Made by a program: the position numbers and the translations under genes. A DNA stretch of 64,000 nt, taken from contig CM041465.1 of NCBI GenBank assembly GCA_023213395.1, forward strand, positions 81,103,741 to 81,167,740, written 5' to 3'. A model generated the notes under the pieces. That model searched no databases. It saw nothing but the letters and a program-made list of their open reading frames with translations, and had not been told where the DNA came from. Each line of letters starts with the position of its first letter. Position 1 is the stretch's first letter. Source of the DNA: Cycas panzhihuaensis (Eukaryota; Plantae; Cycadophyta). This document shows, one piece after another, positions 20,440-47,933 of the stretch.

Positions 20440-23400
20440 TGTTTCCCAGCTACTGGGAATGGGTATGGATGAGTCAACTCAGGTAGGTAGAGGTACGTTT
20501 CTATCCTTTGCCTTGGTCAAATATAAAAAGGTAAGTTGAAGTGTCTCTTTGTTTTTATTGCATGATTGACTGGTTCATTTACATAGCCATTATACATCTA
20601 TTGCTTGATCATGCTACATGATATCATTTCAACCTATGACGATCTAGGGATATGGATCCCATGGCACTCCACAACCCTCCTCCACATCTCCATATTATCC
20701 CAAGTACTAATCAGCCCTTGTGGCCTAATCACCATCCCATTGACATGCCTCAACCTCTGGCACCTTACTTAGGCATGGTGGGCATTTCCTCATTTGCTTA
20801 GCAACTTTTTAGGAGATTCTTGCCTTTGGTACTCCACCTAGCATAGGTCTCTTTGATCCCTTGACTATCTCCTACCACCTGGACAAAGTGTCATGTCCTT
20901 TAGGCCTGAAGCATCCCTTTTTTCTTGAGCTTCCAGACTTCCTTTTGTTGTTTCTCTATCGTACCATGATAAAGATCGTAATACCATCGTAAACATCACA
21001 GTACCATGAAGTTTATTGCAGGGTGGCTATCATTATTTACTTTTTAAAGTCTGTCGTGGATAATTTTGCATTTATTACAAAATTTCCATATGGTAGAGAC
21101 ATATTCCTAGCCTAAGTTGAACCCTAATTGCTCGATTAAGCTAGGGTTAGGTTTAAAACCTAGAAAAGCCCTTATTTTTTCCTCTTCCACTAAAAAAAAC
21201 TCTCTCTCTCACTCATTCTTTACAGCTTCCTGTAGAAATGGCCTACACATAGCTGACACATCAACCTTCCAACCTGAGATTAGCCCCCTATGGCTCTAGA
21301 TCTATAGTAGAAGGCCTACAATAAGGCTGCCCTAAGAAAGGGCATAGTACAAGCTTGCCACCAAGCACATATATCCCTCTTTAGTCTAGTCTCATCTTCA
21401 AATTGTAGCTTCCATAGTGTTTCACCTATAATTCCTATAGGGCTGGCCTTCTTTCCTCTTTTCTCAAGTAGATCTGCCCTTAATCTACCTATAGCAGGTA
21501 TTCCTTCCCCTTTATTTTATTTTTCTTCCTTCAAATTGTTAGAAAGTGGTTTGAATATCTTAAATAACACCCATTTCTTCTAACTTTCTTGTTGCACATA
21601 GGAGGTAAACCCTCTTTTTCTTGACTATTCATCATTCCTTCCAACTCTTCTCTAGTTTCTCCAAGGAGGCAGTGAGGAAGAGGTCACAAAGGGAAAGTGA
21701 AAGGTATAAAGGTAGGTTCTGTTCCCAGCAAGCCTTCTCCTCAAGGGCAGCCCCCTTCCCCCCCTTTCTCTTTCTTCTTCGTGCTTCCCTTGGGTTTCCA
21801 AAGGGCTTCTAGAAGAGGGGTCACCACTAGTAGCAGTATATAAAGCCTATTGCTGCACTTGGTCTCAGCTTTGCAGGCCTTACATGAGAAAGAATCGCAT
21901 CCTCAAATCAAACCCTACCCATCATTTGGTGTTAGGTTAGTTAGAGGTTGCAAAAGTTGCACTTTGTAACTTTTGTAACATTGACAACATTTATAGCTTT
22001 GCATTAACCTATCACTCATACATCAAGGTTTTGTTAGACAATCCTTGCCTGCTATATTTATGCTTGGGTAGTGTGAAGAGTTGTAGTCTTAGAGGTTTAG
22101 ACAATCTAAGGCTAACCGCCCCCATCCTCCTTCTTGTATTTTTTGCATGAAAGGAAGTTGAAAGTTGGTTTTAGATGCAAAAGTCTATTTTGGTTAAGAT
22201 AACTTGCATTCTGTTATTTTATATATTGCATATATATATACACATTATGTCCTAGCAACCCTATGGGAAGGGTGAATATTACTTGGTTCTAGATTCCCCT
22301 TTCGCCATGCATGGAGAAGGAGAAAGATGCTTCCACCCAGGTACATCCTTGTCTTCCTTCTTGGTATTTCACTTGAGTCTTTTTCATAGCTTTCTCTTCC
22401 TTTTTTCTTTCTATTTTTTCCTTTCAATTTAAGGAAGCTAAGGAAGCCCCCCTATCCTCATTCACCAGCATCACCACATCACGCTGTCCACATTTAGGAA
22501 TAGTAATAGGAAGGTGAATGTGACAAAGGGGATAATGCTCCTCCAACTACACCGTTTTTTGTGTATGCTCCTCACTCCCTTTTTGTCCTACTCCTCTTGC
22601 TTTGTTTTGTTCATCCACATGCATTACATATGAAGGAAAAGGGAAAAGAAAGAGAACTTGCATACATTACCTACACACATTTAGTTTGCTTACCTATTTA
22701 AAAAGTGCACTAGATAGGGGCCATACTCATTGCATACTTATTTGTTACACATTATTCTTAGCCTTGCATTCCTTGCATGCACCTTATATCACTTATGATT
22801 ACTTTGCTAGTTCCTCATCCTTTTTGCATTTGAAAATTAAGGAGAGCGAGGACATACATGAGTGGGTAAATGAGTGTTTTATTTTCTGTTTATAATTGTT
22901 CCTTTCCTTCTTCCCAGAAAGAACCCCTTCTTTGTACAAGAATACAACACCATATTGATAACCTCATTGTCACCCACATTGCATAGCCACCGGCATATAG
23001 AAGAGTTGAAACTCTCTCCACCATCGTTTCATGTCCTTAAGGTCATCTTAGGCATAGTGCCCTAAGGACAATCCTCCTTCAAGGCCACTTCCTTTTTTAA
23101 TCTTTGTTGTACTTATCGTAGCTAGGAAACCTTAGCACAACCTTTAGGTTAGTCACACACTCATAGATTGGTCATCTCGCCATTCTGCTTCAAGTGTGCA
23201 TCACCCTTGCTGCTTGCCTAGGCCCACTTCTTTTACACCCCATACTTTACATGAGGAGCCATCCCCTCGCTTATCTTCTCCTCCCTCCTTCAGCCATCCA
23301 AGGGTGGGAGGGCCCATCTTTCGAGGTTACTCGGGAGCCCCAGGATATCCCTCATGTCTTTCACCTCCCAACTGAGGTAGAGTTACTTTGAAGGGAGTTT

Positions 23401-23538
23401 GTGCGTAATTTACGTGTCTTGAACTTGCATTTCAATGCACAGATGCCTTTTGTGGGTGATCTCCTTAACTTTCCAGATAGATCTTTACTTTAGAACCTCT
23501 TCATTAGTTGACTCGATTTTAACCAAGTGTGGTTACTA
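20440..23538 (+). repeat. 5' LTR of A (~3.1 kb)
   Basis: Direct repeat of 35321..38428; starts TGTTTCC; followed by the PBS. Confidence 0.95.
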
Positions 23539-23539
23539 T

Positions 23540-23557
23540 TGGCGACCATATTGGGGA
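23540..23557 (+). promoter_or_regulatory. PBS, tRNA-Arg-like (Tat/Ogre type)
   Basis: TGGCGACCATATTGGGGA immediately after the LTR; homologous degenerate copy in C at 47915-47932 (minus). Confidence 0.8.
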
Positions 23558-23905
23558 TCGCCAGTAAGGGATTAATCCTCTCTCCTTTCATGTTGGTCCT
23601 ACTACCTTCCTAGTAGCTCTTTTTGGTTTGTTGGGCAGCCCCCATTACTCACACCCCATTATACCTCTTGCTTCTTCTTCCAACCTACAAATGAAACTTG
23701 TATGCAACGATTCTCATGTCGCTTGTGAGGCCTCCCTCCTTTGTTGGAAGACCCTTCTTATCACTCCCTCCTTTCATCAGATTTTAATTCCATTATAGAA
23801 GGACTTCCTTCAGGTTGGGCATATCATGCCTATATATTCGAATCTCATGAGCATACTACCTCTTTCCAAGGGCCCACCTGAGAGGGTAAGGAACCTATCC
23901 TTTAT

Positions 23906-26900
23906 TTGGGTGACCAAGAACACCTACAAGTTCACCACCTCTCTACTCATGAAGTAGAGGTCTCTTCTCCTCTAAAGTTCCATCACCCTAGTGGTGATTC
24001 TCATGAGGATCACCCCATGGGGTCTTCCTCATATGAGGTTCCCTCTGCCTCTTATAATCAAGCGGATACTCCTGTTATGGATGTTTTCGAAGCCTTTACC
24101 TAATGCTTCCAAGCCGCTCGCCTCCAACCACATCCCAAGTGGTTCGAGAGCATCTTGCGAAGTATTATGCTTACTTTCTTTACATCCACCTTACCTCATC
24201 CATCTCGCTCAACTCCTCTACCTATGATGAGTTCATCTTTTGCCTCATCTTCCTCCTCTCATGGTCTATGCTCCTTGAGGACCAACCAAGGTATGTCCTC
24301 TTCCCAACTTGGGTTGAGCATGCCCCCTTCTAGTTAAATAATTTCACCTCAACTAACTATAGTTTATCCATACCTATTAGATCTAGGGCACTCATATATT
24401 CCCTTACTTCTAGCCATGTGAAGTCCACCCCCACACACTCCCAAGTTTAACCTAGGGATTCTTCCCTTTACGTACCTCCAGGTTATATCTCTTAACCATG
24501 GGGGCATGACAAGGGAAACTCCCTTCCAGGTTATGGGATGGACCTTTTGCACCCATATGGGGTTGCACCACCCACAAGCAGCCCATATAGGTAAAACTCG
24601 GTCCTACGCCCCTCCTTTCCATCCTCCTATGTCACACCTCATGTTGCACCTATGCAAGGAGGGCAAGCTCCCTCCCAAGGCACCTTCTCTCAAGTTCCTT
24701 TCTAATAAGGGGTGTTTCCTTGAGGGGGGATACGTCCCTCATCCCCATCTGCTCCTATGTATATTTCTTTGAATGTGAGACTAGTGTCTTATCACCAAAT
24801 GGGAGAAGGCCAATATCCCCTTTCGAATCAAATTCCCCAAGGAGGATTTGGGCAACCTTGTTTACCTCCTCTTCCATCTCTCGTTGATCCTATGGTCCAG
24901 TCAAGGGTACGCCCCTTTATGGACTATAGATTGACACCTCTATCTATTAGGGCACTAAGGACTAACTTACTGCCTCACTCTCTTGAGGTTCCCAAATTTA
25001 ACGGAACTTCATCACAAGACCCAATAGAGCATGTCTACAGATTTTCTATGGCATACATTGATTACTAGGCTTATGACTATATCCTTATGAAACTCTTCCC
25101 ATGATCCCTTCAAGGTAATGCCCTCAAGTGGTTCTATCACCTGCCAGCATATTCTATCTTTTCATTCCAACAACTGGTTGATAAATTCATCAATTATTTT
25201 GACATAGCCTATCCTTTCGAGAGCAGAATGAAAGCCATCTTGTCTCTTAAACAGGGTCACAATGAGATGAATCATGACTTTGTGAGACACTTTTATGACC
25301 TTCTTCACTCCACAAAGGCAACTCTACCCCAGGAGTTGAAGAGGAATCTTTTTGTGAATGCTCTTTGCCTAGAAGTCCACGTTGAAGTCCTTACAATGGG
25401 GGCAACGACATGTGATTCCATCATAGCCAAGTGCTTGGTGCTTGAGGCCATTGAGATCCAAGTGGGTCTCAAGAAGCTCCTCAATCCCTCACAACGGCGT
25501 GAGGCACCTCCACCACCCCATGAGACTAAAGTCCAACAACCTACCAGGTCTTCTTCCCACCTAATGGAGAAGACCTTGGATCCTCTCACTTCTGCTATAT
25601 ATTCCTTTGAATGTACCATGAAGGAGCTCAAACTCTAGGCCCCTTCATCCACCACCTCTTATAAACCAGTTCACCACGCCTCTCAAGCCACTCCCCCCAA
25701 GGGTGGTAAAACTCAATCTTCTCAAATGAGGAAGTTTGATTTCTCCCTAGAGAAGAAATGGCATTCCATCCATGGGGAATGTTTCTATGAAGATTCATAG
25801 TGACGGGCCCAACACCCAAGAGTCACTCTGCAATATGATTCTTCTTCCAAATAGGCATTTAGGCTAAACCTAGACTAACCCATTCATAAGGATCCTTTCC
25901 TCAAACATGGGGAATGTGATCATAATAACTAACAAAAAGGTAGCCGAAATAGAGAGAGGTCCCTAAACCCTCGCCCTTCGCAAGCTAAAGGGAAGGGTAT
26001 AAGGAACTCATCCTCTTCTTCTAGCTCTGCCAACCATCGCACTCCTTTGCCCTCTCAGTCCTAAAACAAGGGAAAGAGAGTTATTCTGATGATCGAGACT
26101 ATACCATTATATGCCTTAACTCGGTCTCAAGTGGTTAAAGAGGCGAACGATGTCTCTTCTTCCACACCTCACCTTGATCACCTTCCATAAGTCCTCGCAC
26201 TCCCCAAGACTATTCCTGTGTGCCCCGGTCATTACAAATTTTGAAGGGCTCTTCTCCAACCTATTGTGAAGGGGAAGACTTTCTTCATTATTGATGAGCT
26301 TCATACTGTGGCCGCGGGGATGTCCATAATGGACGTCTTGAGGAGTTGCCCTAAACAACATACACTTCTCTTGGAAGCCTTGGGATTGGGTGACATGTTT
26401 ATTCACACCTTGGGCGTCACTCTAAGTCATGAACCTATCATCTCTTTTGACCTTAAGGACCTGCTTCAACCAGTGAAAGGGAATTCCAATAGCACTACCC
26501 CTTCACCATAATTATTAACACTCCTAACTACACTATTTGAAGAACTGTTGTGGACAATAGTTCTTTCGTTAATGCCATGCCCTTACGCATCATGCAAGAG
26601 CTTGGTATATTAGCCCTAGAGCCAGTTCCATGGTGGTATCAAGGCTACGATGGTAGTGAAAAGATGCCCCCTGGGATTGGTATCCATACCTGTCACACTC
26701 GAGGACAAGACTATCCTTACTGACATTATAATTCTCGATGTTGATGTCAACTACAACCTTTTGTTGGGATGCTTATGGCTTGACCAAATAGGAGCTATGT
26801 GCTCATCTCATTGGGGACAACTTAAATTCGTCTATGAAGGGTGAATGAAGGTTGTCTCTCAAGAGCCTTCTCCAACCAACCAATCTCACCAACCCCATCA

Positions 26901-29900
26901 AGCAGCTTGCGATAAGGCAAAGGGTGATAAGGGTCTGTCTGCCCATGCTTCTGCTTGCTCTATCGATATTCCTAGCCCATCTAGCTTAGAAGAAGGTCCC
27001 TCCTCTTCTTCCTCAAATCTCATTCGCTTTACCCCTATTGGTTTAGGGAGCTATGGATATCTCATCGTTCTTAGTGACAATGAGTCCAACGGCGAGGATA
27101 AGGACCTTCCTCATCCCATATCCCTCCTAAACATGAGTAGGGGGCACTCTATACATTCTAGGTCTAGACCTGAACCTTCTCCCATTAGGGAGACCAGCTT
27201 TCCTCTTAGGTCGTATGTCATTGCTCCTCCCAATCATACAATCCCTTATATCACTCTGTCTTCCACTTCATTACCCTCTATAGACAATGAAGCGAGAGAG
27301 CTTCTTGTTGCTTCTCACAAGAGGACCCCTTTTGACTCCTCCAAAGAGTCCCTTGGATATATTGAGTGGTGCGTTGACTACTACGGTCCTACTACTCCTT
27401 CTACTCCTCCCTTCTCATCCCCTTGATGCATGGTCATCTATAGGGTGGACTATTTTGAGGATGACGAGGCCTTGCTCGAGCACCTAGCGGGCTTTACACC
27501 TAATCTCCCTTCTAATCACCAAAAAGTCTTAGCTATTAGGTCATCTGTTACTGACCCAAACCCATCTCCTATTCTGCCCTCTTTTGTTGATCGAGCCCCC
27601 CTTCACTTCGAGGAAAGGAACGTTATGTGCATGGGGGCAACCAAGGACATAGTCCTTGCCCCAGGCAAGGTCATAAAGGTGGGAGTGAAATGCTCTCCTA
27701 ATGAAATAAGGTAATACACCCTTCTGTTCTAAGAAAATTGAGATGTCTTTGTATGGGATTATTCTGATATGAAGGGAATAGACCTTTCTATCATGACCTA
27801 CAATCTTACTACCATCCTGGGTGCTCACCTCGTGTGTCAGAAACAACACCCTCTTCATCCCAAACTTTTAGCTACCATTGAGATAGAAGTTAAAAAACTC
27901 CTAAATATGGGGTTAGTAACTTCTATCGACTACCTCAAGTGGGTGTCTAACATTATCCCCATCACCGAAAAGAATGGGATAATTAGGATATATGTTGATT
28001 TCTGAGATATCAACAACGTATGTCCTAAGGACAACTTCCCACTCCCCTTCATCGATCAAATCATTGATCGAACCATTAGTTTTAAAGTCATGTCTTTAAT
28101 GGACAGCTTATCAAGCTATAACCAAATCTATATTTCTCTCGAAGACCATCACAAGATGGACTACCCCTTGGGGCACTTTTTCCTATAAAGCGATGCCCTT
28201 TAGGCTAAAGAACGTAGGCATCACTTATCAAAGGGTGATGCAATTCATCTTTCATGACTTTATCAATAAAACCTTAGAGGTTTTCATGGATGATATGATC
28301 AGTCTCTCACGCATTAAGGCCTGCCATCCTTCCGATTTACGGGCCATCTTTACATGCTGTCATAAATACCATGTAAGCTTGAACCCTCTCAAATGCGTAT
28401 TTACTGTAACAGTGGGCAAACTCCTCTGTTTCCTTGTCTCAAAGCAAGGAATCTAAATTGACCCCAATAAAGTCAAGGCCATCCTTGACATGTCACCTCT
28501 TCAGACCCAACGATAAATTAAGTCATTCTTGGGTAGGCTCAATTTCCTTAGGCATTTCTTAGCAGATTTTTCCATGAATACAAAACCACTTACCAACCTG
28601 TTAAAGAAGGGGGCCCTATTTGTTTGGTCTTCAAAGGCCCGATAAGCCTTTGAGGAGTTTAAGAAAGCTCTCACTTCTGCTTTAACCCTAGCACCTCCTC
28701 TCTTCGACAGGCCCTTCATTCTCTACACTTCGACTATCGACAAATCCTTGGGCACCATGCTAACCCAAGAGAATAACTTGAGAGCCAAAAGAGCTATTTA
28801 CTTCATTAGTCATACTCTCATGGCTACTGAACTTAATTACTCACCTATCAAGAAGGAGTGCCTCTCCTTGGTGCATGCCACTAAGAAGTTTAGGCATTAC
28901 TTACTTGGGAATACTACTTGTATAATCGTCCACTCTGATCCCCTAAGATACTTGCTAACCCAATCTGACTTGATAGGTAGGACTGGTATGTAGGCCATCC
29001 TCCTTTAGGAATTTGACCTCCAAATCATTAACAGGAAGTCAAAGAAAGGGATGGTCATTACTGAATAACTCACTGACACCCCTATCCCAAACCCTCTTGA
29101 TGTTCCTGTTGATAATTCGTTGCTTAACAAGCCCATTTTGGCTATTTAGGATTCTTCCCATTATCCACTTGCTGAAAGTGAGTGGTAGGGGAACATTGTG
29201 CAATACCTCACCTAGTAGTAGTATCATCCCGAAGCTAGCGACAAAGTTAGGTCATATATTCAAGCTATTGCCAAGTAGTACTTGCTCATGGGTGAGGTAT
29301 TGTGGAAGAGATCCTTTGATAAGATCCTTCTCTATTGCATCAACCTCGACAAAGCAGACTAAATACTTCGTAATTGCCATAGTGTCATTTGCAGGGGTCA
29401 TTTTGGAGGCCAATCTATGGCCCAAAGGATCCTTCACATGGGGTATTATTAGTCATCCCTCTTTAAGGATGCCTATGCTTATGCCTTATGATGTCATCAG
29501 TGCTAAGAGCATGCTAACATCACCCACTTGCCTTCAAGGCCCTTTATCCTATCATATCCCCATGGCCCTTCTCCTAATAGTGGTTAGACCTTATTAGAGC
29601 CATATCTCCACTTTCTTCATCGCAGCATAAGTTCATCTTAACTACGACAAAATACTTTACTAAATAGGATGAATCGGTCCCTTTGTCTTCTATCCCTAGT
29701 AAGATGATAGCTGCCTTCATCTACCAACATATTATTTGTCATTTCGGAGTCCCTGACGTCCTGATTACAGACAATGGAACTTGTTTCTATAATAAGGAGA
29801 TGGACAAACTTTATGAGAAATTCAAAATTTCTCACAAGACCTCCTCCCCTTATTAGCCTTAATCCAATGGCCAAGTTAAGTCATTTAATAAAACCCTTAT

Positions 29901-30425
29901 AAACATCCTAAAGAAAAATGTTGCCCAATCTAAAAAAGATTGATATCTTCAGCTCCCTTCCACCCTATGGTCATATCACATATCTATCTGCACAGCCATG
30001 GGAATGATCCCATTTTCCCTAGTGTATGAAACAAAGGTGGTTCTCCAATTAGAAGTTGAGATCCCTTCCTTGTGAGTTTCCCTTCAGGGTCTTATTGATG
30101 AGGAGCACTCTGTTAAGCTCATCTCTTAGACCTTAAGGCCTTAGATGAGAGACACTTGATTGCTTACCAAGTGAACCTTACTTCTAAGGCTAAGGTGCAG
30201 AGGACGTATGATAAACACCTTCATCCATGCCCTTTACATCCTGGGGACCATGTCCTCAAATTGGAATATCTCCATGATCGCTTATCTAAGTTTGGACCTA
30301 AAGGGATTGGCCCCTTCGTCATTCTCAAGAGCCTTGACAATGACACTTATAGGATCACAACCTTGAAGGGTCTTGAGTTCGAGAAAGTAGTCAATAAAAA
30401 GTTCCTAAAGAAATTTTACGTATGA
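23906..30425 (+). pseudogene. Tat gag-pol (long N-extension, gag, PR, RT, RNase H, integrase)
   Basis: gag EVPKFNG..DPIEHV, SLQGNALKWFYHLP (~24985-25145); protease VVDNSS ~26548, YNLLLGCLWL; RT MPFRLKNVGITYQR, FMDDMI; RH ELNYSPIKKECLSLVHATKKFRHYL; INT H-H-C-C ~29375-29505, ITDNGTCF, KFLKKFYV stop 30425. Start approximate. Confidence 0.95.
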
Positions 30426-31149
30426 TTATCTCTATTGATACATAGATTAGGCACACCTATTTCTATTTTTCACGCTATGAAATAAGCCTAAACTATCATC
30501 CTAAGTGTGTCTCCATTCCCCCTAATCATAGGCGGAATGGTGGATTGAGATGACTCTCCTACTCTTTCTAGGTTCCTCCTATGGCACATTTTGGTTTCCC
30601 TTCCTTGGGGGACTTTCCCTCCTAATTGGGTATGTGGTCCTTATCGCTCCTAAGCCTGGATGCATTCCCTAACTAAGATGGCATGATTGAGTATCGTTAC
30701 TCCCTCTTCTGTTAGCACTTCCTTTGCATATCCTACTATGCTCCTATGATGGATGTATACGACTCCCCATCTCCTAGCACCACATATACTTATCGCCTAC
30801 ACTCGTGGTGATCATGTGTGCCCGCTAAGAGTATGACCCTGTATGGAAGGAAGTATGCATGCATAACTCAAATAATCCTGTAACACAAATCATGTAACAA
30901 TCAACTCCAAATTAAAATTATCATGATCTATAACTCCTCATGCAACTGTGCACCCATACACACATATACACAAACACATAAATAAAAGAAAATGTAACAC
31001 AATACATCATCATATATCATCACATACCATCATACACCAAATGGGATGCCAATGGCCCCATCTATATATATCAAAATCATAATGTGTCATATCATACAAA
31101 GGGTATAGTACATCATTAGCAGGAAGCTGGATCCTTGTAGGGAGGAGTA

Positions 31150-33126
31150 TAATTATGTGGTAACATATAGTGACTCCTTGGAGGTCTAGTGCTTTCCTAA
31201 TCAAAACCAAATACACCATGCTCTCTAGTGCTCCTATCCTCATGGCATATCACCTCCTAGTCGATGCAATCCTTCCCCAGGGGACCACTTACCTCCTAGA
31301 CTCCTCTTGCACCTCTAGGACCTCCCTACCTTGCTCCCCTTATCTCAAGGCCTCCTCAGGGTCATCACCATCATGTGGGTATGAATCTTGCTCTATGACG
31401 ACCTTGATGCCACCTGGTCCATCAGCTGATCATATCTTCCTTGGATACGATCCCTCTCTTCCTCTACCTATCAGAGCCTCTCCTCTACTCCTCAGAGTCA
31501 CTCCTCTATTACGAAGACTCTAATACAACTCTCTCCATCTCCATCTGCTCTAGAACCTTGAGCCTAAAGCACCTGGACTTGACCACGTAGGGTATCCCTC
31601 TCCGCATAGGTCCTATCCAGTTGTCCCACCCTCACCTGGTACTCATGGGACTCAACTACCTAGATGTCCCTAGTCCTGATCAACAGGGAAAATTATGCTG
31701 TGTGTGCCCCCGCCGATCATAGCTCCTCTCCTGCCTGGATGGGAGGTTGCCCCTCCACATAGGCCTCAGAGAATATCTCTCAGACTATCACCTTGATCAA
31801 CCTCCCCATCCCCGTTACTCCTTCTAAGTTAAACGTAACACATATTGATCCAAATATCCATATGCATATCAAACCCTTAAAAGTAAATTAAAAGTAAACT
31901 AGCCAAATGCCTGGTAGTCAAAGGATGGGTGGAATGGGTAGTGTCTCACCTCCTGGGACAACTAGCTCCTTGACTCTGGTGACTATCACCTCCTTAGGAC
32001 TTCCCTCAGTTACTGGTACCTCCTCCTCCTTAGATACCACCTTGCCAACTGCCTGGCCTGTTGGGGTATCTCCTCCTCCTTCTACTGCTACCTCTACTAC
32101 TGCTACCACCACCCAAGCTCTCCCGACCACCCTCAGTCTTCAAACCAGTGTGCGGGGTGGCCTGCCTCTCCTTGCATCTCCTAGAGGCCCTGCCTCACCT
32201 CCTGCGGTCCATAATAGACCTGCCTCAGTACCAGTTACTCATAATGGGCATGCCCCATTACCCCCATCATCATCATCATTGTCATCGCCACCTCTATGAC
32301 CACCTCTTGCTCCTCATGCTCTACTTGCCTCATCATCACTATCCCACCTCACCTCTCTATATAGATCTACCATATAGTCTGCCATGGTGAGGAGGTCCAG
32401 TGAAGTTGCCTCCATCAAACATTAGACATATGCCTAATCCTTGGTCCCTCTAAATCAAGTCTACCACTTGTGTACCATAGGAGCCCATGTTGAGATAGGA
32501 TGTGGTCCTCTTGCTACTGCTACGACTCCAAAGTGATCCAAAAACCAACATTGCAGTAGCATACTATAGGAGAATCCTCCTCTCCCCATCACTCTAATAG
32601 CACCTAGCTGGGCGATCATGTTCACTGCTATCAGGATGGCCTAATCCATCCTCTCCCTAGCCTCACATCTCCCGACCATCTCCATCTAGCTGCTGGGGAT
32701 ATCTTTATAGTTCAGTTTCTAGGAAATGTGGAACAAAATAGCTAATGTGATCAACTTTCTCACCCAAGAAATATGTGACATAACCATGCTCTACACTGGT
32801 AACCCACGCCTCTCCCACCTATCCTAACTCATGAAGAATGTGGCTACCTCCCTATGCACAACATCGCTACTAGGTAATGCCTCTAGTGATGCTAGTGATT
32901 CTCTTGCTGGTATGCTGAGGATCCTTTGTATGTCCCCTAGTGTGATGGTAATGTCCCCTACTTGGGGGAGGTAGAATACATACCGCCTACAATCCCAATG
33001 GGTAATGATGTCTACCAGAAGATGCTTGTTAGATGCGTACTGTAGTGTCATGATGACCTTCAACAAGACACATCTCCTTATGATCTGCTGATCCCCCCAA
33101 GTCAACATCTTAATGAAACTCATCAT
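31150..33126 (-). pseudogene. Antisense Plant Mobile Domain (PMD / aminotransferase-like, MAIN/MAIL-related) gene of A, two exons, coiled-coil C-terminus
   Basis: LLVDIITHWDCRRYVFYLPQVGDITITLGDIQRILSIP matches the PMD motif W...tF.lp.Ge.titL.Dv..ilglP; downstream GFSYSMLLQCWFLDHF matches LLQ.W..eh; intron 31821..31910. 3' end approximate. Confidence 0.85.
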
Positions 33127-34408
33127 AGTAACCCTGATGTTTTCTTAATTATCCACTACAATAATTGCCTACAAAACACTCAACAACTAATCAAAATACC
33201 TCTACATCTATTTATCCATCCTCAAGATGCCTCTTCCCCCCATTCCTAGTTGAATTTGGTACCTCTTTGGTCCACTTTTCTTATTTTTTTACTTATGAGT
33301 CTCTACCCTGTGTCAAACTTTACAGCACTGCAGAGTTTGACCAGGTCCCCGCTAAGATTTCAACATGTTCTTAGTGTCCCCATGACAAACTCTACAGCAT
33401 CATAAATTTCACTGCGAGGCCAACCATACCCCTCATATAATGGGGTGTTATGCCCAAAAATCCCAAAAAGGTTTACCCAAGTGAGCTGTACTCAGGCCCA
33501 TTGGGACTAGGACTACCTAATGCGCTAATTCTCCCTCTCTTTGGACCCAAATCAGGCTCCAAAGGATCCCAATTCACCCTTAAGGGGCCAATAATCACCT
33601 AGTAAAAATATAAAATGACATTCATTTCAAACAACAAAACGAGGTGGCTATGGGATGATCTACTCATCGGATCTGGTCTCACCACCATCATTTCGCATCC
33701 CTAGTCCTAACGGGTGTCTCATCACCTCAATCCAATGGCTTGATCTCCCTCTGCATGCCTCTGATGTTGGGCAACACTCTACTACATAAGGAAAAGGGCT
33801 CCATATCGATCGTGAGTCCATGAAAATGAATTCTATTTTTGCTAAGTTTTCCTTATATAGGTGTGGGCCCTGAAGGGTACCTCCTCCTTTTGTCCTATCA
33901 TGACATCCCTTGGGACTGTCTCTTTCCCCTCGTTACCTTCGCCTCCATGGCCCTCTTTTCTTCTTTTCCCTTCAGGCACATTTCTAGTGAGCCCTTGAGT
34001 TTATAGGAGGCCCTTTCTACCTCAATTTTTATGCCATTTCTAAACATGCATGTGTTTATACTCATTTGGGTCATTTCGTCATCTTGAACCTAGTTTCACT
34101 GCCCATTTATACCTTTGGGGCTCCCAAAGGAAGCGCCCTCCCTATTCGAGATCGTACCTCACTTCCTTCAACAACCATTGGGACCCTAGAGGGGCCCTTT
34201 CACCACCGTTTCCTTCTCATCTATCGGGTTAGTATCCTCATCCTTAGGTAGCCTCATCCTTGGGTCCTCCTGCCCCTTATGGCCTCTATCCATAGTAACT
34301 TGAGTTCCTCACAACTATTTTATACTGTTGAGTCTTTTTTTTTGCTCATTAACCTTGCCATCACTCTTTTTCCTCTTTCGCCCTATTGAGATCTCTATCC
34401 CTTCCACC

Positions 34409-34831
34409 ATGGCTCTATTCATCTTCACCAATTGTGGGAGTCGTGGTAACCCTGGTCCTTCTACTACCACATGGATCCTCCGTGACCCCTCTGGATATGA
34501 CTACATGTGTTTTAGAATCTTCCTCCTCGAAGCCACCAATAACGAAGTTGAGTACATAATTGTTATTGAGGCTCTTACCGATGTGCTCTACTTCTACCAT
34601 GGACCCATCATCCTCTTTTGCGACTCTTAGGTTATGGTGTTCCATCTCACCCAAGTCTATTAGGTGTGTTACCAATGCCTGAGGGCCTTCACCTTGACTG
34701 TTAGGTCTCTTTCGGCATATTTCTCTTTCGTTGACATCTGACACATTCCTTAGGATTGCAACGCTGAGACAAATAGCCTTGTTTGTCTCATCCTTGAGTA
34801 TCGTCTCCCTCTCCTTGATGATTCCCCTTAA
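34409..34831 (+). pseudogene. Free-standing archaeal-type RNase H (aRH) ORF in the 3' region of A
   Basis: ccaccATGG start; MALFIFTNCGSRGNPGP..ATNNEVEY..EAL..FCDS..HIP*DCNAETNSL; 140 codons in one frame with internal stops. Confidence 0.9.
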
Positions 34832-35310
34832 GAAAGTTGTTTGGTCACCTAGGTGTCCAAGTTTTTAGCCATCCCTTCTTCTATATTATGATTCGCTTGT
34901 ACCTCTGAAAGATGGCCACTAATGAGGTTAAACTATGGTGACCACTAGGTTTATTTCTTCACCCCACTATTCGTGTTGCTCCTGGTATGGAACTTTGACT
35001 ACTCTAATCTTACCTTGTATATATTTTCCACAGTATCTATTTGATGATCACCACAATTGCTACCATTGGTTGATTTACATCCATGCGATAGGGGCCATGC
35101 ACCCTCATCTCTTTCACTACCTATCGACCCTAAGGCAATACGTAGGCAACCCCTACATCGTCTCTCCTTCATCTTCACACCCACGTGTTCTGCCATGACA
35201 CTGTCCATCACCCTTAGCTCATACCATTATTATATTTATATATATTACTAATATTTTGTTGCCAACATTCACCATCACATTATGCTTCCGAGCAGTGAGG
35301 CTCTACTGCC

Positions 35311-35320
35311 AAGGGGGTAG
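35311..35320 (+). promoter_or_regulatory. Polypurine tract of A
   Basis: AAGGGGGTAG directly before the TG of the 3' LTR; the same motif is at 39053-39062 (minus) in C. Confidence 0.9.
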
Positions 35321-38300
35321 TGTTTCCTAGCTATCAAGAATGGGTATGGACGAGTCGACTTAGGTAGGTACATGTACGCTTCTATCCTTTACCTTGGTCA
35401 ATTCTAGAAAGGTAAGTTGAAGCATCTCTTTATTTTTATTGCATGATTGGCTAGTTTATTTGCATGACTATTATGCATTCGTTGCTTGATCATGCTGCAT
35501 GATATTGTTTCGGCCTATCACGATCTAGGGATATGGATCCCATGGAACTCCACAACCCTCCTCCATGTCTCCATATTGTCCCAAGTACTAATCAGCCCCT
35601 GTGGCCTAATAGCTATCTAATTGACACACCTCAACCTTTAGCACCTTGCCTAGGCATGGTGGGCATTTCCTTATTTGTTTACCAACTTTTTGGGAGCTTC
35701 TTATCTTTGGTACTCCACTTAGCATAGGTCTCTTTGATACTGTGACTGTCTCCTTCTACCTAGACAGAGTGTCACACCCCTTAGGCCTGAAGCATCCCCC
35801 TTTTCTTGAGATTCTCAACTTCCTTTTGTTGTTTCTTTACAGCACCATGACAAAGATCATAGTATTGCTGCAAACTTCGTGGTACCACAAAGTTTACTGT
35901 GGGGCTATTGTCTTTCTCTATTTTTTAAAATATGTTGTGGCTAATTTCATATTTATTATGAAATTACCACATGGTAGAGACATATTCCCAACCCAAGCTA
36001 AACCCTAATCACTTGATTGAGCTAGGGTTGGCTTTAAAACCCAAAAACACCCTCATTTCTTCCTCTTCCACTCTAAGAAAAAACTCTCTCTCTTACTTAT
36101 TCTTCAAAGCTTCCTGTATAAATGCCCTACAAACAACTGACACATCAAATTTCTAGCCTGAGATCAACCCCCTACGTCTCTAGATCCATAGCAGTAAGCT
36201 GGCAATAAGGTTATCCCAAGGAAGGACACCCTACAAGCTCACCACCAAGCATAGATATCCCTCTTTAGTCTAGTCTCATCTTTAGATTATAGCCTCTATA
36301 GGGTTTCACCTATAAACCCTATAGGGTTGGCCTTCTTTCCTCTTTTCTCAAGTAGATCTACCATTGATCTACCTACAATAGGTATTCCTTCCCCTCTATT
36401 TTATTTTTCTTCCTTCAAACTGTTGGAAAGTGGTTTGAATATCTTATGTAAACCCTATTTCTCCCAGCTTTCTTGCTGCACATAGGAGGTAAACCCTCCT
36501 TTACTTGACTATTTATCATTCCTTCCATATCTTCTTTGGTTTCTTCAAGGAGGCAGCGAGGAAGAGGTCACAAAGGGAGAGTGAAAGGAGCAAAGGCGAG
36601 TTCCATACCTAGCATCCCTTCTCCTCAAGAACAACCCCCTTCTCTCCCTTTCTCTTTCTTCTTCGTGCTTCCCTTGGGTTTCCAAAGGGCTTCCAGAAGA
36701 GGGATCACCACTGGTAGCAGTGTATGAAGCCTATTATTGTGCTTGCTCTCATCTTTGCAGGCCTTGCATGAGTAAGAATCATAGCCCTATATTAAAACGT
36801 ACCCATCATTTAGTGTTAGGTTAGTTAGAGGTTACAAAAGTTACACTCCACAACTTTTACAACATCGACAATATTTATAACTTTGTAGCAACCTATCACT
36901 CATATGTCAAGTTTTTGTTACACCATCCTTGCTTGCTATATTTGTGCTTGGGTAGCATGGAGAGTTGTAGTCTTGGAGGGTTAGCCATTTCGAGGCTAAC
37001 TGTCCCTATCCTACTTCTTGTCTTTTTTGCATGAAAGGAAGTTGAAAGTTGGTTTTAGATGCAAAAGTATCTTTTGGTTAATATAACTTACATTGTGTTA
37101 TTTTATATATTGCATATACATATATACCTTGTATCCTAGTAGCCCCATGGGAAGGGCAAACATTACTTCATTCCAAGTTCCCCATTCACCACATGTGGAG
37201 AAGGAGAAAGATGCTTCTACCCAGGTACATCCTTGTCTTCCTTCTTAGTATTTCACTTGAGTCTTTTGCATAGCTTTCTCTTCCTTTTTCCTTTTTGTTT
37301 TGCCCTTTCAATTTGGGGAAGGTAGGGAAGCCCTCCCTATCCTCATTTGTCGGCATCACCACATCATGATGTCCATATTTGGGAATAGTAAGAGGAAGGC
37401 AAACATGACAAAGGGGATAGTGCTCCTCCAACTGCATGATTTTCTAGGTACGCTCCTCACTCCTTTTTTGTCCTACTCCTCTTGCTTTGTTTTGTTCATC
37501 CACATTCATTACACATGAAGGAAAAGGGAAAAGAAAGAGAACTTGCATACATTATCTCCACATATTTAGTTTGCTTGCCTATTTGAAATGTTCACTAGAT
37601 AGAGGCCATACCCGTTGTGTACTTATTTGTTACACATTCTTCTTACGCTTGTATTCCTTGCATGCACCATATATCACTTATGATTACTTTGCTAGTTCCT
37701 CGCCCTTTTTGCATTTAAAAATTAAGGAGAGTGAGGACATGCATGAGTGGATAAATGAGTGTTTTATTTTCTATTTATGATTATTCCTTTCCTTCTTCCC
37801 AGAAAGAACCCCTTCTTTGTACAAGAATATAACACCATATTCACAACCTTATCATCACCTACATTGTGTAGCCACTCGTATGTGAAAGAGTTGAAACTCT
37901 CTCCACCATCATTTCATGTCCTTAAGGTCATCTTAGGCATAGTACCCTAATGACAATCCTCCTTCAAGGCTACTTCCTTTTTTGATCTTTATTATACTTA
38001 TCATAGCTAGGTAACCTTTAGGTTGGTCCCACACTTATAGATTGGTCATCTCACTATTCCGCTCTGAATGTGCATCACCCTTACTACTTTCCTGAGCCTA
38101 CTTCTTTTACACCCCATATTCTACGTGAGTAGCCATCCCTTCACTTATCTTCTCCTCCCTCCTTCGACCATCTAAGGGTGGGAGGGCCCATCTTTCGAGG
38201 TTACTCAGGAAATCGAGGATATCCCTCATCTCTTTCACCACCCAATTAAGGTAGAGTTACTTTGAAGGGAGTTTGTGTGCCATTTATGGGTCCTAAACCT

Positions 38301-38428
38301 ATGTTTTGACATATGTATGCCCTTTGTGGGTGATCTTTACTTACCAAACAGATCTTTACTTTAGGACCTCTTAGTTGATTGAGTCAATCTTAACCAAGTA
38401 TGGTTACTCCCCCAGAGGTACGATTCCA
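35321..38428 (+). repeat. 3' LTR of A
   Basis: TG...GATTCCA; repeat of 20440..23538. Confidence 0.95.
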
Positions 38429-38433
38429 CTAGA

Positions 38434-39052
38434 TAAAAGAAGACTTGTGGACAGTTACCCCATAACAAACTTCACAGTACTGCAAAGTTTGTAGCGGTAC
38501 CATAGAGTTTACAATGATGCAGATAAAACTAAGGAAAAAGAAGAAAGGGGGGAGCCTAGAGGCTCCCAAAAAGTAGGGAATCCTAGACCCTAGGAAGTAT
38601 GCTACAGTATGAAGGTGGAAATGAGGGGTCACAAAACATAGAGGGACCATAGAAAGTAGGAAACAATGGTCAAGGACTTCCAAAAAGGGAGATAAATAGC
38701 TCATGTGGGTGACAACCAGACATAGATGAGGTGCTAGGGGTTATGCCACACTAATGAAGCGATGTGCAATAGACATTGGGAGCCGAAAATAATTGGAGAT
38801 GCCATGAACACATGGCAGAGGGTTTTGGAGTGCTATGGGATATGTATCCCTAGTCGTCATAGTCTAAAAATCATTAAAAGGCAACATAAACATGTAAGTA
38901 ATGCTGGCAAATCATATAGTAAATCAATCATGATGTAATGTGCATGATGAGCCTCAATCAGCCATTTCTAAAATTGGTGAAAGGGAAGATAGAAGCATAC
39001 ATGGACTTACCTAAGTCAAGTCGCCATGTCCATTCTCGATAGCTAAGAAACA
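38434..39052 (-). repeat. 3' LTR of C, proximal part
   Basis: Aligns with 50539..51157; preceded on the minus strand by the PPT. Confidence 0.93.
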
Positions 39053-39546
39053 CTACCCCCTTGGCAGCAGAGCCTCGCTGCTTAGAAGTGTGATATGATG
39101 GCAAATGTTGGCAAAATAAATGTTATTAATATACAACAGATATAGTGGTGTCATCATCTAAGGGTGGTGCCAAGTGTCATGGTAGAATGTGTTTATAGGA
39201 AAGAGAGCAGGACAACATAGGGGATGCCTATGCATCATCTTGAAGTCTAATAAGAGAGAAGGTGGATGAGGGAGATGCCCCCATCATACATATGTAGGAT
39301 GACTGGTGGTGACAATCATGAACATGGTTGACCAAATGTTATGAATGAAAGTTATGTCTATATGAAAGTCAAAATGATGAGGAACTTCATGCCAAGGTGG
39401 TACAAAGGATAGAGTAAAGAGAACAAACCTGATAGTCACCATAGTTTATCCTCATTATCAGCTGGCATTTAGAGGTGTGAACAGATCGCAAGATGGAGGA
39501 TGGGACAAACCCAGAACTGGGGTGCTTGGGCCACCCAATAGGTTCC

Positions 39547-39945
39547 TCAAGAGGGATTGTTAAGGAGAGGGAGACGACGCTCGAGGATGAGATAGACAAG
39601 GCTGTCCACCTTAGCGTTTTGGTCTCAGGGAATGTGTTGGATGTCTATAGAAGATAAATGAGACAAGACTCTCAAGTATGGCTAATGTACCTGGTAAACT
39701 TAGGTAAGATGCAACATGACGACTTGAGAGTTGCAAAGCAGGACGATGGGACTATGATAGAAATGGAGTGCATTGGTAAGGGCTTCAATAACATATGTGT
39801 AGTTAGCTTCGTTATTGGTGGCCTCAAGGAGGAAGACTTCAGAATATATATAATCATACTTAGAGGGGTTATTGAGGACCCATGCAGTAGAAAAAGGGCT
39901 TGGATTACTACGACTTCCTCCATTGGTGAAGATAAGCAATGTCAT
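39547..39945 (-). pseudogene. Free-standing archaeal-type RNase H ORF of C
   Basis: MTLLIFTNGGSRSNPSP..ATNNEANY..EAL..LCNS..HIP*DQNAKVDSL; orthologous to 34409..34831. Confidence 0.9.
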
Positions 39946-41212
39946 AATGAGAAGATGAGAGTTTCTATCGAGCGACAAGGGAAGAATAATGACGACGGGG
40001 TCGATGAGTAAAGGGAAGGAATAGGAGGTAATGATAGGACTACAAAGCACTTGGAAGGCTATGAGTAAGGGCCATGAAGGACATGAGATTCTTGAAAAGA
40101 GGCTACCTAGTGGCAAGGAGATTGACCCGATTGAAAGGAAGGAAATGGCAGCAGAAAGAGCCCCTTTAGGGCCCCAAGGGTCACTAAAAGGATTAAGGCG
40201 AGGTCCAGAATAAGGGAGGCGCTTCCTTTGGGAGGTCAAAAGGGTTGAACTGGTAGAAACAATGGATCCAAGGTGGAAAACTAAGCCAAAGGAGTATAAA
40301 CATGAGTATGTTTTGGAGTGGTACAAAAATCAAGACAAAAGGGGTCTATGAGAGGCTAAAGGGGTTATCATAAATGTGCCAAAGAGGCTTGAAATGGGGG
40401 CCACAGAGATAGAATATGGGACAAAGCTAGAAGAAAAAGGTAATAAGGATAAGGAGATGGTCATGAGGGCTATCATAGTAAAAAGAAAAGAGGAGATGCC
40501 CCTTAGGGCCTTTGCATATATAAAGGAAGGAAGGTGAAAATGGAGTTCAATTTCATAGGCTTGTGATTGATCTAGAGCCCTTCCTCTACATGGTGCAATG
40601 TCATCCAATTTTAGAGGCATGCAGTAGGAGATCTGACTGTTGGATCAAGGAGCGGAGATAACTGACATGACCAGGATTACGAGATGGTGATGGCTAGGCC
40701 AGACCTAGTAAGTGGATCACCCCCTACCCATTCCATTTCGTTGTTTGAAATTTGATAGTTTTTAAGTTTTTTGAGCTAGTTTCTGGCCCTTAAGGGTGAT
40801 TTGGGATCCTCTAGAGCCCGATTAGGGCCCAAAGAGGGGGAGGACTAGGGCATTAAGTAGCCTCGGTCTCAGTGGGTCCAGCCTTGGCCCCCCTGGATAA
40901 AAGAATTTGGGATTTTTAGGCATCCCCTCTTATTTATGGGGGGTATCAAGGTCCCCACGATAAAGATTATAGTTACATAAGGTTTGATGTGGGGCCACTG
41001 AGAAAATGCTAAAATCTCAATGGGGACCATGTCAAACTCCAGAGTACTGTAGAGTTTAATACAGGGTAGAGGTAGAGTAGAGGAAAAAAGAAGAAAGAGA
41101 GGCCCGAGAGGATGGTTAGCTTGTCATGATATGGAGTACATTAGGACTAATTTTTTGGGTGGCTTTACAGGTAGTCATCATAGTGGACAAATGCGAGAAC
41201 ATTAGGGTAGCG

Positions 41213-43150
41213 ATGATGAGCTTTATAGAGATGATGTCATGAGGTGACAGGCAGACATTGGGACACTGCGATTTACTGAAGATCATTAGGACCCCATAGT
41301 ATGCATCTAATCAATACCTCTTAGTAGATATAGTTTTCCATTGGGACCATAGGTGGTATGTTTTCCATCTTCCCTAAGTAGGGGATATCACTATCACACC
41401 ATGAGACATCAAGAGGATCCTGGGAGTACCAGTGGGAGGAACACTAGCACCGCTGGGTACATTGCCCAACATAGATGCTACTCACATGAAGGTGGCTACA
41501 TACTTCACTAGCTAGGGCAGGAGGGATCGATGAGGGGTGTCAGTGTAGACCATGGTGATGTCACAAATTCCTTAAGTGAGGAAGCTTATCACATTAGGCA
41601 TTCTATTCTAGATTTCCTAGAAATAGAATTATAGGGACATATCAGGTGGGTGGATAGACACTATTAGGAGATGCAAGGTTAGGGAGAGACTAGACTGGGC
41701 CACCTTGATAGCGGTGAATATGATCGCACAACTAGACACTATTTAGGTGGTAGGGAGAGGAGGATTCTCATATTTCACACTATTACAGTGTTGGTTCTTC
41801 GATCATTTTGGGGTAGTAGCATCACTAGGAGGGCCTCACCCTATCTTGGCATGAGTGCCCATGGTGCACATGTGGCATACTTAGTTTAAAGGGACTGAGG
41901 ACTAGGTCAAAGTCAAGTAATTAGTGGAGCCAATGTCGTTGGACCTCCTCAGTCTAGTAGACTACATTGAGGACCTATATAGAGGAGTGCATTGGGACAA
42001 CGACGACGAGGCAAGAGGGTTAGGCGGTGGTCCTGGAGAGGGTGGAGATGACAATAGAGATGATAAGGTAGGTCCATCAAGAGCAACAAGAGAAGCGACA
42101 GGTCCTTAAAGAGTTGTAAGAGGAGCAATAGGTCCTTCGAGAGCTGTAGGAGGAGGTAAGCCACCCCACACATCAGTGCATAGATTCAAGGTGGTAGGTA
42201 GAGCTCTGGCAACAGTAGCGACAGAGGGAGGAGGATATGCCCCAACAAGCTAGGAGGTAGGTAAGGTGGTACCAAAGGCTGAGGAGGAGGTACCAGTAGT
42301 CGAGGGAGGCCCCATGGAGGAGGTGGTGATTCAAGTTAAGGAGATGGCTATCCCAAGAGGTGAGACATTACCCTTTCCTAACATTTTTTGGCTACTAGGT
42401 GCTTATATAGTTTGCATGATTTGATTTTGAGGTTTTGATATATGTATATATAAACTAACACATGGTGTATGATTTGATAGGAGTAGTAGAGATGGCAAGG
42501 TTGCTTGAGGTGGTAGTTCAGGAGATATTCTCCCAAACCTATGCAGAGGGGTAACCTCCCATCCAGGTTAGAGAGAAGCCTTGATTGGTAGGGGCATGTA
42601 CAGTGACATTTACCCCATTAATCAGAGCTAAGGATATATAGGTAGCAGAGTATTAGGCATACCAGGCGAGGGCTAGACAACTACAAGGGAAGCAGGATGG
42701 GATATATGTGGAGAGGGACTAGGCAATCATAGAGAGAGACATCTTACGAGGCTAGGTCTAAGCACTAGAGACTTAGGGAGGAGGAACAGTAGGCAGTGAT
42801 GTAGAGAGTCACATCAGGATAACTGTGCTAGAGGAGAGGCTATGAGGAGTAGAGGGAGAGAGGGATCGTATCCAAATGTGATGCGATCAACTGGTGGAGC
42901 AAATGGCTGCAAGGTCATCATGGAGTAGGACTTAAACTCACACTATAATGACGACCTTAAGGAGACCCAAGATGAGGGGAGCTAGGTAGGGAACTCACCG
43001 CGGTGATAGAGGAGCCTATGAGGCATGTCATCTCCTAGGGAGGGGTCACATTGGCTAGGAGATGATACCCCTTGAGAGCAGGGATGCTGAGGAGTGGGAT
43101 GTATGATTAGTTTTGATTGGGAAAGCATTGGACCTCTAGGGAGTCACCAT
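41213..43150 (+). pseudogene. Antisense PMD gene of C, two exons
   Basis: MMSFIEMM..LLVDIVFHWDHRWYVFHLP*VGDITITP*DIKRILGVP; LLQCWFFDHF ~41780-41810; GT-AG intron 42399..42480; coiled-coil exon 2. 3' end approximate. Confidence 0.85.
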
Positions 43151-43234
43151 ATATTGTCAAATGATTGTACTCCTCTCTACAAGGATTCCAACTTCCCTAA
43201 GATGATGTATTATATTATTTTGTATGATATGATT

Positions 43235-43375
<141 letters not shown>

Positions 43376-44099
43376 GGCCTATTAGCACCCCATTTGATCC
43401 ATGATGATGATGTTATGATGTTGTATTTGTTGTTTATTTATTTATATATTTATGTATATGTAGACATGGGTGCATAGGTGCATGAGAGGCTATGCATCAT
43501 GATGATTTTAGTTGATTATTATATGGTTTTTATTATTAGATCATTTGGGTGGTGCTTATACATCCTTTTATGCAAGACCACACTTGTAGCAGGCACACAC
43601 GACCACCATGAGTGTAGGTGATAGACACGTGTGAGGCTAGGAGATGGAGGGCCATGTATGTTTGTCAAAGAAGCATAGTAGATATGCAAAGGAAGCAAAA
43701 ACAGGGAGACAGTATGGGTACTCAAGCATGCGGTCCTAGTTGGGGTGCGTTTTCATGCTTGAGAGTGACAGAAGCAAACACATCCAATTAGAAGGAAAGG
43801 TTTCCTACAGGAAGGAAACAAAAGATGCCATAGAAGGACTTATAAAGACAAGAAAGCCATCCTAAGTTGCCACTCCACTTGTGGTTAGGAGGAATGAAGT
43901 TACACTTAGAGTGGTAGTTTAGGCTCATTTTAGAGTGAGAAAGGAGAAGTTAGTATGCTTAGTCTACTCAGGAGTATGGAAGGTCACACGAGGCATGGAG
44001 GTCAGTGATGAAGGTTAGACCCAGCGTGGCTAGGTCTATAGGTAAAACAAATATGGTCAGAGCTAGATGGATGCAATGGTCTTGACGTATGATAGATTA

Positions 44100-47000: not shown

Positions 47001-47650
47001 GCATGTAAAGGAAAGGATCCCCAAGTTGATCTTGGGAATGCATGGGTTTGGTCCCATGTGGTTAGAAGTCGGGGGATACATGAGTCACCTAGATCTAATG
47101 GGAGGCAGGTAGACTACGATCGATTAGGGCATAGTTGTTCGGCTAGACGGAGGCATACTCAACCCATGTTGGGAAGAGGATATACCTTGGGTGGTCCCTA
47201 AGGAACATGGACCATAAGGAGAAGAAGGCATAATGAGGGATGCCCTCGTTGCAGGTAAGGGAGTCAAACGAGATGGACGAGGTAGTGTAGATGTGGAGGA
47301 AGGAAGTGCTATGCTTCATAGAATATTATCCAATTACTTAGGATGTGATTAGAGGCTAGCGGCTTGGAAGCACTAGTTAAGGGCTTCCACCACATCTGCA
47401 GGACGGGTATCCAGCTGATTGTATAAGGTTAATGGGTCCTCATATGAGGCAGACCCCATGGGGTGGTCCTCATAAGGATCACCACCAGGGTGATGATGCT
47501 CCAAGGGAGAAGATACTTACACCTCATGAGTGGAGAGGTGGTGGACTTGCGAGTGCTCTTGGTCACTCGGGTAGAAGATAGGGTCCTCACCCTCTTGGGT
47601 GGGCCCTTGGAAAGAAGTGGATGGTTGGTGGGATTTAGAGACATAGGCAT
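44100..47650 (-). pseudogene. gag-protease of C (RT, RNase H and integrase absent)
   Basis: PKFDKTSSQNPIEHV..SLQGDILKWFYHLP (46224..46490); protease IVDNGS ~44895-44912; YNLLLG ~44700. By ~43940 the sequence is already homologous to A's post-integrase 30470 region. Confidence 0.9.
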
Positions 47651-47933
47651 GATATGCCTAATCTAAAGGAAATCTTTCCATGGTCGAATAAGAATCAGAT
47701 GATGGAAGCAAATAGTAGAGAAAGTCTTTCAATGAAGGAGGGAGGCCTCGTAAACGATGAGATAGTCATCACATACAAGTCTCTCCTAAAGGTTGGAAGA
47801 AAAAGAGATGGTATGATGACAAGAATTAGGGACTATCTAATGAATCAAGGAGATCTACTGAAAGAAAGGTAGTACTAACAAATCAGGGAGAGGATAGATC
47901 CCCTTACTGGTGGGTCCCTAGTATGGTTTCCAG

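Follow-up and report, generated by a model that had tools for sequence, protein, structure and literature searches.

A spliced antisense PMD gene and a solo archaeal-type RNase H in the 3′ region of decayed Tat-type retrotransposons of Cycas panzhihuaensis

Introduction

In gymnosperm lineage III of the Tat retrotransposons, an archaeal-type RNase H (aRH) lies downstream of the integrase, and an extra open reading frame (ORF) for a PMD protein lies antisense at the 3′ end (Ustyantsev et al. 2015, PMC4408406). Here we analyse a stretch of 64,000 nt from Cycas panzhihuaensis (assembly GCA_023213395.1, contig CM041465.1, positions 81,103,741 to 81,167,740, forward strand; referred to below as the window) in which two decayed Tat-type long terminal repeat (LTR) retrotransposons, A and C, each hold an antisense, spliced PMD gene back-to-back with a stand-alone aRH.

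The relationship of the aRH to the pol gene has been described in several ways. In the 2015 description, the very C-terminus of Pol is formed by the aRH (PMC4408406), and the TatIII elements of Neumann et al. (2019, PMC6317226) have the aRH after the integrase (INT), a target site duplication of 5 bp and, in 64%, a tRNA-Arg primer binding site (PBS); their median length is 14.7 kb. Biryukov and Ustyantsev (2023, PMC10508981) recognize, as structure #3, elements of Pinaceae, Cycas and Ginkgo in which the aRH has an ORF of its own outside pol; in all other Tat structures it is a reverse-transcription domain inside pol, and the native RNase H (RH) is degraded in all aRH-bearing Tat elements. How an aRH can act from a separate ORF is a question posed by the same paper. 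Most recently, Prokopeva et al. (2026, PMC13468544) describe a "post-integrase" layout with a "solo aRH", and note that reports conflict on its membership in pol.

The kind of element seen here is already published, in that a detached aRH and an antisense PMD gene have both been described for this lineage, the former beyond pol (PMC10508981, PMC13468544) and the latter in gymnosperm Tat (PMC4408406), and the novelty that a first-pass annotation of the window suggested for their combination does not survive. The text portions of the Tat papers, figures aside, nowhere spell out that integrase, antisense PMD and aRH follow each other in this order, nor do they mention a PMD intron or a charged tail exon.

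Organization of the 3′ accessory region

The features of the region in A, from the end of pol to the 3′ LTR, and of its counterpart in C are as follows, with strands given relative to the window.

30117–30425, plus strand: C-terminal end of the integrase and pol stop codon; SH3_Tf2-1 match up to profile position 63 of 64
30426–31345, no strand: non-coding stretch from the pol stop to the 3′ end of the PMD gene; codon periodicity absent
31346–31820, minus strand: PMD gene exon 2, end approximate; charged tail; same-frame homology between A and C, indels in multiples of three, third-position excess (p=0.048)
31821–31949, minus strand: PMD gene intron; 129 nt, GT..AG, 64% A+T
31950–33126, minus strand: PMD gene exon 1, ATG at 33126; PMD domain and acidic/Gly-rich linker; 12 in-frame stops
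33127–34408, no strand: spacer between the divergent start codons; 1,282 nt, no codon periodicity (p=0.40)
33313–33340, no strand: palindrome of 28 nt, ~190 nt upstream of the PMD ATG in A
34409–34831, plus strand: aRH ORF of A, ATG at 34409; 140 codons, 4 internal stops
34832–35320, plus strand: non-coding tail, with the polypurine tract at its end beside the 3′ LTR
35321–38428, plus strand: 3′ LTR of A; Kimura two-parameter (K2P) distance to the 5′ LTR 0.175
39523–39945, minus strand: aRH ORF of C; 3 internal stops
39946–41212, no strand: spacer in C, a collinear copy
41213 to ~42975 (end approximate), plus strand: PMD gene of C; exon 1 41213–42359, intron 42360–42480 (121 nt), exon 2 42481 to ~42975

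The first-pass annotation had put the integrase stop at 30425, the PMD start codon at 33126, the RNase H start codon at 34409 and the polypurine tract at 35311, and these positions hold, as does its divergent spacer of about 1.3 kb. It had also seen the module repeated in C, where we find the aRH (39945–39523), the spacer and the PMD gene in succession. From A 30443 to the polypurine tract the two elements are collinear at ~67% identity, and both genes belong to the element rather than to a chance juxtaposition, since their order is unchanged between two elements this far diverged. In a sliding test, codon periodicity is confined to PMD exon 1, PMD exon 2 and the aRH; the spacer and the stretch that follows the integrase are without any. 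The constraint seen between A and C indicates that PMD and aRH were functional genes in active ancestors, and the copies in A and C are both dead. We consider that the 3′ regions of A and C probably represent the accessory region of post-integrase Tat elements (REXdb TatIII; structure #3, Tat H/Tat I), with A being of the autonomous type and C lacking reverse transcriptase (RT) and integrase.

The antisense PMD gene

The PMD frame is so broken by stops that no long piece can be scored by Pfam, and stop-free pieces were used, with the two exons searched separately and placed side by side only for the local count of in-frame stops. An N-terminal piece of 106 aa matches PF10536 at E=0.0076 (15.9 bits, against a gathering score of 34.9; profile positions 8–53 of 347), and two non-overlapping pieces fall, by language-model features, in PMD clusters of the ESM Atlas, at 0.94 (28 of 30 hits) and 0.92 (22 of 30). 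A search for protein homologues with a PMD piece returned no scored match; that search is bound by shared words and length, and its blank says little.

The coding character of both exons is seen in how A and C differ. Differences in exon 1 are distributed over the three codon positions as 0.27/0.22/0.44 (p=1.4e-7), and a third-position excess is found in exon 2 and in the aRH (p=0.017) as well. All eight indels that separate the PMD exons of A and C are multiples of three (9, 9, 15, 3, 12, 21, 3 and 21 nt, the first four in exon 1), and the end of the gene was set at ~31346 because the indels past that point cease to be so. Within the gene, indels of other lengths (2, 4 and 2 nt) are confined to the intron segment of 121–129 nt. 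The donor context of this intron (GAG/GTGAGA) is identical in A and C, an AG stands at its 3′ end in both, and its A+T content is 64–69% vs 49–53% in the exons. In C the two exons are in different frames, and removal of the intron restores the reading frame. An alternative in-phase donor candidate is situated 39 nt downstream, with a GT there in C only, so that the donor given here is a probable one.

An antisense, spliced PMD gene, as the first-pass annotation had it, is borne out by the conserved GT-AG intron and the frame restored on its removal from C, together with the PF10536 match and the Atlas clusters. Because it is an antisense gene that carries an intron, we regard it as a transcription unit of its own. 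The product of exon 2 is a charged tail rich in Glu, Arg, Leu and Gln, which, as judged by eye, is probably a coiled coil.

A low-complexity linker, acidic and Gly-rich, makes up the middle of exon 1 (31950–32330, minus strand); all of the in-frame indels fall in it, and it is without codon periodicity. Its reverse strand yields spurious Ser/Thr/Pro-rich ORFs (31898–32296 and 32034–32387), and related contigs of one sequencing run (X1) skip 32042–32326.

The solo archaeal-type RNase H

The aRH of A lies in sense orientation, 3,983 nt past the pol stop and 490 nt before the 3′ LTR. Pieces from the window match Pfam RVT_3 (PF13456) and RNase_H (PF00075) weakly (16.9 against a gathering score of 21.6, and 19.4 against 25.8, respectively). 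When searched against solved structures, a two-sequence aRH profile finds the archaeal-type enzymes 4h8k/3u3g (E=1.7e-7), Halobacterium RNase H1 4e19 (7.7e-6) and Rv2228c (8.8e-4), and the same profile reaches only 0.06–0.5 with E. coli-type RNase HI.

Among 1.84 billion representatives we found 426 relatives of the aRH, the nearest of which are short fragments; those designated P0001–P0006 come from short Logan/ENA contigs. One of them, P0005, is the nearest intact relative, a stand-alone protein of 142 aa that matches RVT_3 with 62 bits and archaeal-type RNase H structures with E ~1e-18, and P0002 also passes RVT_3 (22 bits). P0005 is a complete ORF on an ENA contig of 563 nt, and this contig might be a transcript. 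Scanning metagenomes with the aRH alignment gave no match.

The aRH Met stands at one alignment column in A, C, P0001, P0002, P0003 and P0006, and the peptide upstream of it is not conserved. The aRH is detached from pol, starts at a conserved ATG of its own and matches archaeal structures, which agrees with the stand-alone archaeal-type RNase H of the first-pass annotation. A contiguous pol-aRH frame is excluded for this family because the intron-bearing antisense PMD gene intervenes in two elements and the aRH start is conserved.

Neither copy in the window encodes a working enzyme. The position of the first catalytic Asp is Asn in both A and C, the fourth acid position in A is also Asn, and further positions are lost in each copy; the first catalytic Asp is retained in P0001–P0003 and P0005. 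The aRH frame of A is open for just 73 codons. The aRH copies of A and C are pseudogenes of an active family. P0001 (73 aa) ends at the same codon after an Asp-Ser motif as does the copy in A, the same codon having turned into a stop in separate copies.

Long frames run antisense to the aRH in both elements (34418–34864, minus strand, 149 aa; 39658–40008, plus strand, 117 aa), and these are longer than the surviving sense frames. They form a codon-aligned mirror frame without a Pfam match, and most likely arise as a by-product of the coding sequence on the sense strand.

In the native RH of A, the first catalytic Asp position reads Ser, as judged by eye in one decayed copy. With phmmer, no solved structure was matched by the native RH piece.

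The divergent spacer and its palindrome

The spacers of A and C are ~65% identical with few indels, and the possibility of hidden coding sequence in the spacer was rejected on its lack of codon periodicity. The spacer palindrome is of the form AAAC-N8-AC-N5-AGTTT, and this pattern is present at only six places in the window (9 strand-wise matches, against 0.05 expected by chance). Two of these are in the spacers, ~190 nt upstream of the PMD ATG (33313–33340 and 41032–41059), and the others are in all four LTR copies, ~550 nt in (20989–21016, 35870–35897, 38465–38492 and 50569–50596). The palindrome of the A spacer differs from that of a C LTR copy at 5 of 28 positions. It is plausibly a shared regulatory or factor-binding site of the LTR U3 and the spacer, to be regarded as a candidate; it would fit an internal promoter for PMD, and does not by itself demonstrate bidirectionality.

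Past function and present decay

The extent of decay is similar in the two elements. The K2P distance between the LTRs of a pair is 0.175 for A and 0.188 for C, with transitions and transversions at ~3:1, which corresponds to tens of millions of years at the low rate commonly taken for conifers (2.2e-9 per site per year) and to several million at angiosperm rates. There are 23 in-frame stops in the PMD gene of A and 29 in that of C, and the aRH has four internal stops in A and three in C. Several stops fall on the same codons in independent copies, for which deamination of methylated cytosines may account. The view of the two as genes stands insofar as both bear the marks of past coding constraint, but neither is open in A or C.

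Expression and roles of the two genes

We infer the mode of expression of each gene and both functions as follows. The aRH would be made as a separate polypeptide from its own ATG, just upstream of the polypurine tract, and would act as the working RNase H of the element, removing the RNA template in reverse transcription, because the native RH beside the RT is degenerate in this clade. As for its mRNA, we favour a subgenomic RNA spliced from the LTR-driven sense transcript, to which we give about an even chance; an internal promoter comes second, as a possible but clearly less likely source. On the sense strand, candidate donors are present in the leader and candidate acceptors ahead of the aRH, which are compatible with such splicing rather than evidence for it. 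The PMD gene would be an antisense two-exon gene, encoding the PMD domain and the charged tail and expressed from its own promoter. Its intron is antisense to the genomic RNA, so that it survives retrotransposition and is spliced only from an antisense transcript; because splicing needs that transcript, the PMD gene must have a promoter of its own. The site of this promoter is probably the 1.28-kb spacer, which carries the palindrome that also occurs in the LTR U3. As to what PMD does for the element, the leading guess is that it modulates host silencing.

Several points weigh against this account and against the class placement. Element A, at 18.0 kb, is slightly over the published TatIII size range, and the 2015 description of the aRH as the C-terminus of Pol contrasts with its 4-kb separation in A. 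The placement of A in TatIII / Tat H-I is one of architecture only, and the degeneracy of the native RH was judged by eye in one decayed copy. Profile searches for PMD and RNase H, which the first-pass annotation had proposed, did give matches to PF10536 and to RVT_3/RNase_H on stop-free pieces, but every Pfam match on the PMD and aRH pieces of the window is below its gathering score. Lastly, the contigs of the one sequencing run, whose origin from RNA is not established, are just 80–95% alike and give no canonical joints; they cluster on PMD, aRH and LTR, and their joints, whose ends are all non-canonical, resemble indels between copies.

The first-pass annotation had proposed that PMD and aRH are a two-gene unit, transcribed both ways from one internal spacer promoter independently of the LTR, and that the unit couples chromatin modulation with R-loop removal. 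We find this unlikely. The head-to-head layout is kept with a spacer of 1.27–1.28 kb in two diverged elements, the palindrome is common to the spacer and the LTR U3, the aRH has its own conserved ATG, and the cassette is retained in element C, all of which would suit such a unit. However, comparison of A and C reveals no conserved TATA-like element upstream of the aRH, and a sense-oriented aRH beside the polypurine tract is what would be expected if the LTR transcript carried it as a replication enzyme. All other Tat structures have the aRH as a reverse-transcription domain in pol (PMC10508981). Neither the R-loop role nor the coupling to chromatin has any support. That the spacer is an LTR-independent bidirectional promoter for PMD and aRH, with a palindromic factor site as in the LTR U3, we hold to be a little more doubtful still; if true, it would answer the published question of how Tat elements use an RNase H outside pol, and would explain retention of the cassette in derivatives without RT and integrase.

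It is improbable that the aRH is not free-standing, with a sense intron of ~4 kb that holds the whole PMD gene being spliced out to give an integrase-aRH fusion. This would accord with the aRH being at the very C-terminus of Pol in Ustyantsev et al. 2015 (PMC4408406) and with the splicing of an intron within the coding region of Ogre elements (PMC6317226), and 18 nt upstream of the aRH ATG a tract rich in pyrimidines is found with an AG that is in phase in A. The acceptor candidate is at another position and phase in C, however, and the integrase stops right after a complete SH3-like domain. Moreover, the Met is conserved in six family members whereas the upstream peptide is not conserved between A and C, and later papers describe the aRH as a separate ORF (PMC10508981, PMC13468544). 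Finally, although MULEs can carry PMD and non-LTR elements of plants an archaeal-type RNase H (PMC4408406), it is hardly credible that the cassette consists of remnants of other transposons (a piece of a PMD-bearing MULE or Ogre, and a LINE RNase H) that landed in the 3′ region. The 4.9 kb are collinear between A and C at uniform identity and contain neither repeats nor target-site boundaries, coding constraint is seen in both genes since A and C diverged, and the literature has both genes in this lineage. A separately translated replication RNase H beside an independently transcribed antisense PMD gene is the reading we prefer.

Organization of elements A and C

The two elements are nested, with A sitting inside the 3′ LTR of C, and were delimited by self-comparison.

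20440–38428, plus strand: element A, 17,989 nt; Tat-type Ty3/gypsy LTR retrotransposon, complete but decayed (self-blastn, flanks of the C LTR, Pfam)
20440–23537, plus strand: 5′ LTR of A (self-blastn), followed by the PBS-like TGGCGACC

Element C is on the minus strand, and has an intact LTR at 47936–51155 and another that is split into 17817–20439 and 38429–39050. The target duplication of A is 5 bp, CCAGA/CTAGA with one mismatch, and the empty site is visible in the intact LTR of C. Pfam matches on stop-free pieces of A are in the order Retrotrans_gag, RVP_2 (weak), RVT_1, RT_RNaseH_2 (2.8e-25), rve and SH3_Tf2-1, which is the Ty3/gypsy order; the integrase stop, at 30423–30425, is just past a complete Tf2-1-type SH3 match. 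The polypurine tract of A is a purine run ending ...AAGGGGGTAG, directly before the start of the 3′ LTR.

The interior of C (39051–47935) has kept gag-PR, the PMD gene and the aRH, and the RT, native RH and integrase are gone. Homology between A and C extends through gag-PR to ~A 27145 / C 44315 and is found again from A 30443 / C 43966, with ~350 nt of C between C 43966 and C 44315 that are without a counterpart in A. Derivation of C from a spliced RNA was considered and rejected, as the homology break at A 27145/30443 has no clean splice-like junction and includes the ~350 unrelated nt. A long (TA)n microsatellite occupies 43160–43380 in C, just past the 3′ end of the PMD gene, where A has few bases (31077–31083).

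At its start the PBS region reads TGGCGACC in A, whereas C has TGGAAACC, and it may be of the tRNA-Arg type. The 5′ LTR of A is without the ~20 nt that close its 3′ LTR (...CCCCCAGAGGTACGATTCCA; 23518–23545 compared with 38400–38428), which is why the PBS-like sequence follows it directly; a stretch homologous to those ~20 nt is present in the 5′ LTR of C.

Outside both Tat elements there are three pairs of direct repeats at 81–85% identity (2053–2469/8357–8773, 52323–52718/59286–59681 and 11760–12117/59926–60268), which probably derive from other old retrotransposons, as LTRs or as fragments.

Comparison with known systems

These findings mostly confirm published knowledge, and do so on decayed copies; their small added value is for the debate on aRH and pol, where they bear on whether a post-integrase aRH is part of pol or a separate ORF (PMC13468544).

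Archaeal-type RNase H1 proteins (4e19, LC9-RNase H1 3u3g/4h8k and the N-domain of Rv2228c, 3hst) are the best structure matches both of the aRH profile and of P0005; these are cellular enzymes, from which the copies in A and C differ by their lost catalytic residues and stops. Arabidopsis MAIN and MAIL1 have the PMD domain family in common with the antisense gene, with the likeness being at the level of the domain only. MAIN and MAIL1 are genes of the host and work together with PP7L in silencing.

Within the Tat clade, Ogre elements (TatIV/V) also have an extra ORF for PMD that lies antisense at the 3′ end (57% of Ogre elements), and both Ogre and Retand (TatVI) resemble the elements described here in having a degenerate native RH and an aRH. 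They differ in that their aRH is between RH and INT inside pol, and Retand has Transposase_28 and not PMD. The post-integrase Tat elements are alike in their Ty3/gypsy order, the aRH past the integrase in a separate ORF and the extra PMD ORF placed antisense at the 3′ end, as well as in the 5-bp target duplication, a PBS starting TGGCGACC, the very long LTRs and the size class. One difference is that the 2015 paper gives a coiled coil to later lineages, whereas here a charged tail is encoded by the second exon of the PMD gene.

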